Of a stretch of 64,000 bases of DNA, positions 8,113-21,691 are shown piece after piece. Numbering within the stretch: position 1 is the stretch's first letter; every line of letters starts with the position of its first letter. The DNA lies in contig JBBPEB010000005.1 in assembly GCA_039096225.1 (NCBI GenBank), forward strand, positions 620,001-684,000, read 5' to 3'. The notes below the pieces were generated by a model, which was not told where the DNA came from, did not search any database, and saw only the letters and a program-made list of their open reading frames with translations. The position numbers and the translations under genes are program-made. This stretch comes from Blastocystis sp. Blastoise. Its lineage: Eukaryota; Protista; Bigyra: Opalinata.

Positions 8113-8122
8113 AAAAAGTCAA

Positions 8123-8173
8123 GAGATAATTGACTCAGGACGCTCTAAATTGTAAAACTTGACTCAGGACAGT
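8123..8173 (+). repeat. Left TIR
   Basis: GAGATAATTGACTCAGGACGCTCTAAATTGTAAAACTTGACTCAGGACAGT; internal direct repeat TTGACTCAGGAC at 8130 and 8159. Confidence 0.95.
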
Positions 8174-8879
8174 CTATTTTTGAGTACTATTATTACCGCG
8201 ATAAACTTGACAAAATGGCAGTGTTTTTATTGTTGTAAATTATAGAGAAAATAATTAAGGGGAAAAAATACACAATTCTTTGTTTATATTAATTATTCTA
8301 TATTTGACGTTGTTGACGAGTGTTATGGAGTCTTATGACGAGATTTATAATGCAATAGTTGACAGAGTTCAAAGTATGAATTTTAATAAGTTTATCAAAC
8401 AGATTCACAATATGATTACTGTCAGAACGTTTTATTTAGTCAATAAACCTTTTATAAACGATCAAAAGACACCAGAGTAATAAACCCTTTAACGAAAGCA
8501 TCTTTTATACGAGTTCCGTCCAATTATGTTACTGATTATGTGTCGTGGGTAGCTCAAAACAATTGTAATGGGTTTTATGACAAAGATGATGACTATATCA
8601 ATGTTATTTTAACAAATATTGCGTGTTTAAAACATTTTGGAGTTAATGATGTGTTCCATTCACGACAAGAGATGGATATTATCATTGGCTACTCCTGGAG
8701 TGTTAGTGGTCAAATTATTATTATAGACAGAGGGTTAGGTACCTCTATTTGATACCGTTGCCCAATTCAAGAATGTAATTGCGTCTATCAATATAATTTT
8801 TACGATGATGGTTATCACCTGGAATACTATCATTTTCAAGATATAAATGTATTTTATAAAATAGTTATTATTATTATAT

Positions 8880-9300
8880 TTATTATTATAGAAATACTAT
8901 TATATATTATTATATATTATTATATATTATTATATATTATTATATATTATTATATATTACTATATATTACTATATATTACTATATATTACTATATATTAC
9001 TATATATTACTTATATTATTATATATTATTATATATATTATTATATATTATTATATATTATTATATATACTATTATATATATTATTATATATATTATTAT
9101 TATATATATTATTATTATATATATTATTATTATATATACTATTATATATATTATTATATATATTTATATTATTATATATATTTATATTATTATATATATG
9201 TATTATTATGTATTATTATTTATTATATATATTATATATATTATTATATATTATATATATTATATATATTATATATTATTATATATTATTATATATTATT
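8880..9300. repeat. (TATATATTAT/TATATATTAC)n degenerate 10-mer microsatellite
   Basis: Directly visible; lies in a probable intron of the transposase relic. Confidence 0.9.
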
Positions 9301-10424
9301 AAATTAATAAATGTAATAACTATTATTATTAACATAATATTTTTATAGAAATGTTCAAAATATGATGCTGATTATATAGAATTATTTAAACATAATACTA
9401 TAAGAGAATCATCATATGACTACTATAAAGATATGATATCAGATTCAATCAATAATCAAACAAATGATACTAATGATTGTATAAATTCTAATTATACTTC
9501 TATTACAATAACTCAAGAGAATGAAAACTTCTGAAAATCTGAAAAAACATTCATGAAACAAATGAATAATCAAAGTTTACTAAAATAAATACTTTTGACA
9601 AAGAAGAGGAAGTATATATAGAACAAGATATAGATGATAATTTAACAAAAGATGAAGAAGAATTAATTAATAAAATTAAAGATTCTACATCTTCAGTTGA
9701 TATTACTAATTCATCATATATAGATAATCTTCTACAGATTCACAATAATAGAGATAAAAATAATATAGCTTCTATTAATTATATTCAACATGAAGATTAT
9801 ATAGATGAAGAGAAAAACGATATTAGTGAAGAGATATATGGCAAATGATATGATTCAAGCTTTATTAATAAATACAGAAATTGTATATACTGTCGACATA
9901 AAAAAATGTTAATCATTATTGGATCAATCTACTTATACAATTAATATAGTCTTTATAAAAACAGAATATAAACTAATGCTCTCTGATCCATTAAATGATA
10001 CATTTGTTCTGAATTATTAAAGAGTCATTCAGAATTTAAGACCATATCTATAGGTTAAACTAAGAAGAGGATAAGAGAGAGATTTCCTAGAATCAACTAC
10101 AACTATATTCATTATGCTGTTACTAATATTATACTTAATGAAAATTTATATAGTTATAATGTTTTAATAATAGAAGTAGTTAATACAATGAATATAAATA
10201 ATTAAGTATTCTTCATGCTATTTGGTAAATAGAAAACCAATAATGAAATAGCTTTGAATAGTAAAAGTATACCTAAGGATCTTCGTTTGTTATCATAGTA
10301 TACCATGATAGTAGGTAACATAAGTCTATTAACTCTATCTCCATCAGTAATCCTTCTTAGTGGTACTTTCATGGGTCTCAGTAGTGTAGCTCTTGTCATT
10401 ACAGGTATATATATGATATATAAT

Positions 10425-11043
10425 ATATATATATATGTAAAAGGATATAAGGATATATATAAAGATGTAGATGAGTTATATATTGATGTATATGGTTTTT
10501 GAATGTATTTGTGACATAATGTTATATATATAATATATATATTCTATATTAGTACTATATATAGTATATATAGTATATATTCTATATTATAATACTTATA
10601 TAGAATATATATATTATATAGAGTATATATAGTACTTATATGGAACATATATATATGATATATAGTATATATAGTATAGATATAACCTATATACATAAAG
10701 ATATATATAACTAGTATATAGAATGGTTTAACATTAATAATAATATCTCTTCGTAGTTATAATAATTTCGCATCTTTATAATACAAGTTATATATATCTT
10801 TATGTATATTGGTTATATATATACTATATATTCTATATAATATATATATGCTATATAAGTACTATTTATATATTCTATATAACATATATATTCTATATAA
10901 GTACTATATATACTATATATAGAATATATATATTATATATATAACATTATATCACAGATGAATCTAAAGACCATTTACATCAATATATAACTCATCTACA
11001 TCTTTATATATATCCTCATATCATTTTACATATATATATATAA
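10425..11043. repeat. Imperfect long inverted repeat (foldback), arms ~260-290 bp, loop ~64 bp
   Basis: AAAGATGTAGATGAGTTATATATTGATGTA (~10460) versus TACATCAATATATAACTCATCTACATCTTT (~10976); complementarity continues inward to ~10716/10781. Confidence 0.9.
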
Positions 11044-18900: not shown

Positions 18901-20606
18901 ATAAAAAATATAGATAGTAATATCATTATATAGTATGTCAGTGATCAACATGGAATATATGCTATGTGTCTAGTTTAGATTATATGAGTGGATATATAAT
19001 ATATGCCTACATAGTTGTTACATTATAGAATACATAAATAATATATAGTATATAAGAATTATTACCTTAATATTATATATATTTTTATTAAATTATATTA
19101 TATTGATTATTTATAACTTTTATTTTATTTCTAATATTATTATATGTCTAATTTTATCTTTTTATAGAATGAATAATATATAAATATCAGATCTGAGTAT
19201 TATATGGTTTATCCTTCGTTGATAAGATATCTAATATACTTATACTTCTTTTACTCTTTCTGGTTTATTGTACATGAAAAAGTAAAATAGAAAAGAGAAC
19301 CATTAATACGCTTATACTCTGCTACTTTATTCATCTATCTACACAATATTTACTATAACAGTAAGGTATACTATATATATTTCTCTTTTTCATGTTTTAT
19401 AGGTTATCAATGATTCATTATCATATTGATAAATCAATCTTATATTTAGATATATACAACATAGAATATATATAATAGTATATATATACTATATATACTA
19501 TTCTATATTCTCTTTCTATTATACAATAACTTTTATATTTAATATATACATTGTATATTCTACTTTGTGTATTATATATGGTTTATAAAATATATTTTTA
19601 TATAGATAAGGTTATACTACTAAAGAAATAGATAATATGTTTGATACTTAAATTATATCTATAGTGCTTTTGGTGTATCTACTTAAGTATATATTTATAT
19701 TATATATAATATCATGAGTATTAATAGTATATATATAATAACTTAATTACATATACTCTATTATGTTATATCTATAGTAATTGGTTTATTGATATTTTAC
19801 TTGGGTGATTTCGAATACTATGAGCATTTATTATATACTTGATATATATATAATAGTAATTATTTGTTATTTAGATAACTATTATTTATATATATATTAT
19901 ATATATATATATATATATATATATATATATATATATATATATATATATATATATATATATATATATATATATATATATATATATATATTATATATACATA
20001 ATTATATATAATAAATAATATATATTATTACTTTCTACTTGATATATATAGAGTCTCCTTATACTTCTTTCTTCATTACTCATATTATTATTCTGAATAT
20101 TTTATACACTTTATGGTTTATATATATTCATTATACATTGTTATAGAGGTGATTTCTCTTTTATATATGATATTAATATTGATTCTATGTATATTATTTA
20201 AAGTATATATTGTACTTTATACTTAGATATATTTTTTTAACAACAATTGTTACTCAACATCATTCTATATTGAAACGTAATATATTATTAATATGCTCTT
20301 ATTCATATTTTATATTTATTCTTTTTAATTTCTATAAAGTTAGTTATTATTAATATTATTATTATTATTATAAAATGCTTTTTATTCTTTAGTTTTAAAA
20401 ATCTTCTTTCTTATATATTCCTAGTTTCTTCTGTGTTTATTTCTATAACTGAAAACTTTATATATATATATATATATATATATATATTTTTTCTATTAGT
20501 ATACTCTATTTAGTATCGTTATATTATTGTTGTGTATTGTATTATTTACATATATTAATTCTAAACAAAACAACATATATAATCATATTTTTAAAGACTT
20601 AATCTA

Positions 20607-21302
20607 TTAAACATATATAGTAATATCATAATGGAGTTCTAATAGTATAATAACAATCAAATAACATACAATCCAGTAGCAGGCTGACCAGATCAATTCC
20701 AATAAACTATGACCAATATGACTATTCAATAATCCTAAATGACTATAATTATACATACTAGCATAATTAATAAGATAAAACAGAAACAATCCATAACAGC
20801 ACCTAATCCATTTCCATTTATTGATAATATATATATATAACTTCTTAATAGATTAATTAGCATCAAAAACATCATTCTAATTGAATATGAAAACCTTATT
20901 AGTCAATTAACCATAAACACCCACAATGATGCCAATTCTCTTTTGAATCTAACTATTCTCATTTCCTATCCTATATAATGATAGAGTATATCATTCTAGA
21001 ATGACCGTAATAAAGAAGAAGCCTAAAGAGATATTTTAAGGTTAATGATCATAATTATATATTTCATTATATACCTATCTTATTCTCACCACTACATTAA
21101 AAACACAATTCAAAGCCATCAGACAACGTCATAACTTCATAGAATAACATATCATAACCATCTTACCATGTTAATGCCGTCTTATATTATTCTTATCACT
21201 TTTCCTATATATACTATACTATATATACATATTAAAGATACTTATATAACATATATACATCAATATATCAATACCCTTCAAGAGTCAATAAAAAATAAAC
21301 AT
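20607..21302 (-). pseudogene. Decayed gene reading inward from the right TIR
   Basis: ATG at 21302, exon-like blocks with GT/AG boundaries, many stops; product unrecognised. Confidence 0.4.
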
Positions 21303-21368
21303 AGAGTTTTCCCCAGTATTATTTTTAAACATTTTTAAAGTCCCCACTCGTAGAATGAGCCGAAGACC

Positions 21369-21419
21369 ACTGTCCTGAGTCAAGTTTTACAATTTAGAGC
21401 GTCCTGAGTCAATTATCTC
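21369..21419 (-). repeat. Right TIR
   Basis: Exact reverse complement of 8123-8173. Confidence 0.95.
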
Positions 21420-21691
21420 AAAAGTCAATTTTGATTCCCACAAACATAATCAGTTTTTTCTGGTAAATTCTAATTAAAAACCGTGATCCACGAATATGTC
21501 GCCCTATGAACACAAAAAATACTCCTTATGTAAAACAATAAACCTTTTTTGGCTTATCAGAGAAATTTATTAAACAATAAAACTAGTATTTTGAAGCTAT
21601 AATATATTGTATATTATCTTTATACAAAAGTATTTTTTTATTCTATTAAAAATATATACTTATATGTGAGCAGAAAAGACTGATTAAAATC

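Follow-up and report, generated by a model that had tools for sequence, protein, structure and literature searches.

Positions 8123–21419 of a 64,000-bp stretch of the genome of Blastocystis sp. 'Blastoise' (GCA_039096225.1, contig JBBPEB010000005.1, positions 620,001–684,000 of the forward strand; hereafter, the window) likely represent a member of a family of non-autonomous Mutator-like elements (MULEs), ~13 kb in length, that is moved in trans. The element is 13,297 bp long (13,315 bp counting the target-site duplications), and has a G+C content of 19%, as against 21% in the window. It is bounded by a left terminal inverted repeat of 51 bp (8123–8173, plus strand) and a right terminal inverted repeat of the same length (21369–21419, minus strand), which are complementary at 51 of 51 positions and whose match stops sharply at base 52. 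A direct repeat of 9 bp, AAAAGTCAA, flanks the element at 8114–8122 and 21420–21428 with 9/9 identity. Perfect ends and a perfect 9-bp duplication around 13.3 kb had been claimed in the original prediction, which was made from the sequence of the window, and were borne out by direct reading and by script. Low-complexity AT repeats aside, this pair of ends is the sole significant self-match inside the element.

Both ends open with GAGATAATTG, and each contains two copies of a 12-bp box, TTGACTCAGGAC, at a spacing of 29 bp. In the left end, box 1 is located at 8130–8141 and box 2 at 8159–8170 (plus strand); in the right end, the boxes occupy 21372–21383 and 21401–21412. The 64-kb window contains six matches to the core motif ACTCMRGAC, every one of them in a terminus, as against a chance expectation of ~0.21. 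When the window was scanned for G+C-containing 10-bp words that are repeated 24–35 bp apart, only the termini and one site in an AT-rich satellite were found. Across the eight ends of the four copies described below, the 12-bp boxes are invariant (8/8), and the 17-bp spacer between them varies at 6 of its 17 positions between two variants. This invariance despite spacer change, together with the same layout in a neighboring terminus (terminus A; see below), suggests that the boxes are recognition sites, putatively bound by a transposase. Searches with the 51-bp end returned just two chance matches in metagenomes, both in coding DNA, and no match in GTDB genomes.

Three further full-length copies were reached in the same assembly via annotated proteins encoded within the element (loci L006, L007, and L008). 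The copies lie at L006 7843–20773 (12,931 bp; duplication AAACAAAATA, 10 bp), L007 7822–20769 (12,948 bp; duplication GAAATTTAA, 9 bp), and L008 7873–20639 (12,767 bp; duplication CATATAACT, 9 bp). Like the window copy, each has 51/51 perfect ends and its own duplication, and the flanks of the four copies are unrelated to one another; the four therefore constitute a true mobile family, and the further end pairs with duplications that the original prediction proposed to look for do exist. Pairwise identity among the copies is 96.2–98.8% over ~12.7 kb, satellite included, which corresponds to a divergence of 1.2–3.8%. Two copies are situated ~200–550 bp upstream of the start of a gene. A GT61-like gene begins ~410 bp downstream of the window copy, and the L006 copy sits between a kinase gene and the gene for uL3. 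Maize Mu prefers the 5′ ends of genes, and the positions of the copies are at least compatible with this preference.

The assignment to the Mutator superfamily depends on the duplications and the ends. Duplications of 8–11 bp are diagnostic of MULEs (PMC6446971), and those of the four copies (9, 9, 9, and 10 bp) fall within this range. Lengths of 9–10 bp within one family have been reported for Mutyl, and variable lengths for TvMULEs (PMC2725143). The first 10 bases of the element are identical to those of maize Mu termini, which begin GAGATAATTG(C) in two primers that are chimeric between flank and Mu end (PMC3440606); at this base composition the chance of such a match at a fixed position is ~2e-6, for a comparison that was made post hoc. 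The duplication length, the inverted ends, and the Mu-like 10 bases, all of which had been recognized in the original prediction, fit a Mutator-like element, and the proposed superfamily is probably the correct one.

Under the standard code, few open reading frames (ORFs) can be seen within the element, which the original prediction described as invisible in the ORF track. No piece of the interior ORFs contains a Pfam domain, and Rfam and tRNA scans were empty. Neither a transposase nor a remnant of one was detected in any of the four copies or in the window by Pfam searches or by tblastn searches that used the exons of a Mutator transposase encoded at another locus of the genome (see below). 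Because it has no transposase, the element can only be a non-autonomous member, and must be moved in trans. The interior is common to all copies at 96–99% identity and is thus the normal content of the family, not the private decay of the window copy; together with the lack of any decayed transposase, this leaves the earlier description of a ruined interior unsupported. Of the recent trans-mobilization that was inferred from that description, the movement in trans stands, and recency is plausible; the copies are 1.2–3.8% apart.

In the interior, an orphan gene reads inward from the left end (8325–9707, plus strand; exons at ~8325–8366, 8456–8672, 8757–8848, and 9349–9707). It corresponds to a four-exon model for a protein of 239 amino acids in other copies, and its start lies 200 bp inside the left end. 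In the window copy, this gene is interrupted by an in-frame stop (9532–9534) and by a shift of frame around 9570, and in L008 by a stop in exon 2; L006 and L007 have it intact, so that it is broken in two of the four copies. The model proteins P0001 and P0003 match the window exon at 97% identity. P0001 has no Pfam domain and no relative in the PDB, and its AlphaFold model (pLDDT 33) gives no usable fold. A search of 1.84 billion representative proteins with the 101 amino acid exon returned only its own 239 amino acid protein and one spurious repeat protein. Exon 3 contains a C2H2-like spacing of Cys and His residues, as read by eye.

Downstream of the orphan gene, Tandem Repeats Finder delineates an AT-rich tandem-repeat satellite with periods of 9 and 11 bp (10523–13621), which is present in all four copies (~3 kb, with varying length). 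At the edge of the satellite, two 163-nucleotide arms of an inverted repeat (10418–10580 and 10886–11048) are 86% complementary and 305 nucleotides apart; this repeat, which falls within the DNA that is alignable across copies, may be a nested foldback. A model of 114 amino acids (P0004 and P0005) is spliced across the satellite, and its last exon lies at 13656–13874 (plus strand; 99% identity to P0004); it has no Pfam domain and no homologue, and is probably not a real gene. Next to the right end, no inward-reading gene was found on the minus strand, either in the reading of the window or in the gene lists of the other copies. In L006, an annotated 336 amino acid 'Ribosomal_L3' model (16691–23195) begins inside the transposon and crosses its right end, and is a chimera: the actual ORF for a mitochondrial-type uL3 starts ~190 bp outside that end. 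The insertion may have corrupted the annotation of uL3, or may drive read-through transcription. No host-gene fragment was recognized in the interior, whose sequence matched no host gene of the window or of the fetched loci. Together, the orphan gene, the 3-kb AT satellite, and stretches of non-coding DNA make up an interior of passenger DNA without a known role.

A candidate for the source of transposition activity is encoded in the same genome. A gene model of 937 amino acids for a Mutator/IS256-type transposase is located at L005 15182–20735 (minus strand; JBBPEB010000003.1), 9.7 kb from the L007 copy, and carries PF00872. Its exons were searched one at a time. Two main exons are collinear on the IS256 transposase model (117–183, E = 2e-3; 182–315, E = 2e-7), and one exon also matches the RNaseH-like domain of ZSWIM1-3, which is MULE-derived. 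Reading of the exons by eye revealed D/D/E-context motifs and a SWIM-type finger (CxCx8CxH), and the last exon is a catalytic segment of Ulp1 (Peptidase_C48) with a score above the Pfam threshold. Judged from its sequence, the gene is apparently intact and has a putative D..D..E core; the fusion of transposase, SWIM finger, and Ulp1 is represented by a single gene model. The 334 amino acid exon has no homologue in a word-indexed search (184–585 amino acid range) and no match in the PDB. Between the transposase and the L007 copy, several annotated 'genes' are pure low-complexity ORFs, such as a Ser/Leu/Ile-rich one of 244 amino acids (L003 4531–5265); these probably reflect misannotation of repeat-rich DNA.

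Transposition of the element would proceed as follows. A Mutator/IS256-type DDE (Asp-Asp-Glu) transposase would be supplied in trans from elsewhere in the genome, would bind both 12-bp boxes of each 51-bp end, and would bring the two ends together. The element would then be excised and inserted at a staggered cut of 9 bp (sometimes 10 bp) in AT-rich DNA, the repair of which would yield the duplication. Such cut-and-paste movement is a presumed mode for the family. In the 10 kb covered, the locus of the candidate transposase has neither DNA shared with the element nor a box-type terminus, and thus we can only infer that the mobilizer is a MULE transposase, either the 937 amino acid one or a relative. 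The active transposase that the original prediction placed elsewhere is matched by an apparently intact gene of the right type, but its link to these ends was not found.

Several observations weigh against this account. Blastn, tblastx, and tblastn comparisons of the transposase locus with the element and the window detected low-complexity similarity only, and no box-type terminus was found in the 10 kb covered around the transposase, which did not include its 5′ flank; no additional box-type terminus was found across all fetched loci either. Individual exons of the transposase match Pfam models weakly (E = 0.03 and 7e-4). In the loci examined, these ends were not found around any autonomous element, and the known copies number only four. 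Finally, duplication length and a 10-base terminal match do not prove membership in a superfamily.

A rival explanation is a non-autonomous element of another or undescribed superfamily that makes duplications of ~9 bp, such as Merlin, in which case the nearby MULE transposase would be unrelated. The missing physical or sequence link between that transposase and the element, the orphan protein without relatives at the left end, and the shortness of the Mu match would all suit this explanation, but we consider it unlikely. Merlin elements make duplications of 8–9 bp and hAT elements duplications of 8 bp, so that the 10-bp duplication of one copy falls outside both ranges, although the three 9-bp duplications would fit Merlin. 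In addition, the terminus of the element equals that of Mu, and the sole transposase seen in ~130 kb of the genome is of the Mutator type; no Merlin or hAT transposase was seen in those ~130 kb. The original prediction had instead favored an element with cargo genes that read inward from both ends, as in MuDR; that is, either a Pack-MULE with captured host genes or a two-gene element with convergent mudrA/mudrB-like genes. The gene that begins 200 bp inside the left end and the two to three genes annotated inside the copies gave this idea its appeal, but the interior models are orphans or artefacts: neither the 239 nor the 114 amino acid product has a domain or a homologue, the former is broken in half of the copies, the 'Ribosomal_L3' model is chimeric with the true gene outside the element, inward reading is confined to the left end, and no fragment of a host gene was matched in the window or the fetched loci. 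Cargo and a MuDR-like arrangement are thus largely refuted, and very improbable. An assembly artefact or a segmental duplication, which might be suspected in an AT-rich and repeat-rich region that is difficult to assemble, is refuted outright, with a negligible probability: four copies on four unrelated flanks have the same exact ends and differing short duplications, which also disposes of the misassembly at either end that had been raised as a possible objection.

A further possibility concerns how the ends are maintained and where the element inserts. Of the two spacer variants, the first is present in the window copy and L008, and the second in L006 and L007; they differ at 6 positions in 17 bp (window 8142–8158 and 21384–21400). 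Both ends of each copy carry the same variant, which indicates that the two ends evolve in concert, and the adjacent DNA differs by <1%. The alignment of the four copies is a mosaic in which blocks private to the window copy alternate with blocks shared by the window copy and L008, and ~60 sites have conflicting groupings. These mosaic sites suggest, at the level of the aligned sequences, that gene conversion may occur between dispersed copies, and a converted patch that was copied to both ends would be the simplest account of the spacer variants. Terminus A (8050–8112, minus strand) is the outward end of a second, related element; it begins GAGTTAAAT and contains a pair of ACTCCAGACAAT boxes at a spacing of 29 bp. 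Its layout is the same as in the 13-kb element, with GAG-TAA followed by two ACTCCAGAC boxes spaced by 29 bp. Only 1 bp separates terminus A from the 13-kb element's duplication, and hence two outward ends stand back to back. Neither a partner end of A nor a transposase for it is present in the window, and an ORF of element A has no homologue in a word-indexed search. On the basis of the 6 of 17 spacer bases that are changed alike at both ends, and of the 1-bp adjacency to A, the ends might be kept identical by active copying, either through end-to-end conversion or through acquisition of a patch that stems from a related family, and new insertions may be directed toward the termini of related elements; alternatively, an unrecognized superfamily might be involved. 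L006, L007, and L008 have no neighboring terminus like A, so the adjacency may be due to chance, and we regard this proposal as unlikely. If true, it would imply homogenization of terminal repeats and end-directed targeting, which are undescribed for Mutator-like elements.

The host of the element is a stramenopile. The protist origin that had been proposed for the DNA is correct: the 239 amino acid protein matched by the 101 amino acid exon is encoded by Blastocystis sp. 'Blastoise' (GCA_039096225.1), an isolate from the gut of a tortoise. No eukaryote is commoner in the guts of vertebrates than Blastocystis. Tortoise-derived isolates have genomes of 26–33 Mb with 21–23% G+C; the genomes of this clade are 1.5–2 times the size of those of human isolates, and the excess was not ascribed to transposable elements or low-complexity DNA in their published analysis (PMC12129017). 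Automated annotation assigned 5.6–7.5% of these genomes to transposable elements, and no Mutator family was described (PMC12129017).

The surroundings of the element in the window include both genes and repeats. A multi-exon Glyco_transf_61 gene (21840–24206, plus strand) starts ~410 bp downstream of the right end, and the element is thus in its upstream region. An ORF of 2583 amino acids (27916–35664, plus strand) has three He_PIG (putative Ig) stretches and is a very large gene for a surface-type protein. It is open under the standard code, by which a ciliate genetic code is ruled out. A perfect hexanucleotide microsatellite of ~330 bp (5285–5616) is open in all six frames, and exemplifies the low-complexity DNA that makes up ~12% of tortoise-isolate genomes.

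Elements of 13 kb in which 3 kb are AT satellite and coding DNA is nearly lacking are a type of repeat that automated libraries can under-call. Such elements also disseminate low-complexity DNA and interfere with gene models, of which the chimeric uL3 model is an example. The element offers a defined substrate, in the form of 51-bp ends that each contain two boxes, and with the candidate transposase it would make it possible to test for active DNA transposition in this lineage. The family is of an ordinary kind, but is new for a host lineage in which none has been described in detail.

Among known systems, maize Mu/MuDR shares with this family the 9-bp duplication, the inverted ends, the first 10 bases GAGATAATTG, and non-autonomous members that are moved in trans. 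It differs in that the Blastocystis element has 51-bp ends with two 12-bp boxes and no homologues of mudrA or mudrB, and resides in a stramenopile. Mu ends are ~215 bp long and contain one MURA site, and Mu elements measure 1.4–4.9 kb, as compared with 13 kb here. Plant KI-MULEs and CUMULE are MULEs with a Ulp1 protease domain, a likeness that applies to the Peptidase_C48 (Ulp1) end of the candidate transposase model at L005 and not to the window element. MuDRx-Phytophthora of oomycetes and the MULEs of diatoms come from the same supergroup as the host, and in the oomycete group the duplications are 9 bp and the ends 40–80 bp long; these MULEs are defined by their transposases, whereas the window element has none and is likened to them by description only (PMC6446971). 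Blastocystis is not mentioned in that survey of MULEs (PMC6446971). Rehavkus and Phantom are autonomous, occur in animal hosts, and have other zinc fingers, but resemble the Blastocystis family in their internal minisatellites (PMC6446971). Mutyl of Yarrowia lipolytica is autonomous and has imperfect ends of 22 bp, but, like the family described here, it makes duplications of 9 or 10 bp, is large (7.4 kb), and carries an extra ORF without homologues (PMC2725143).

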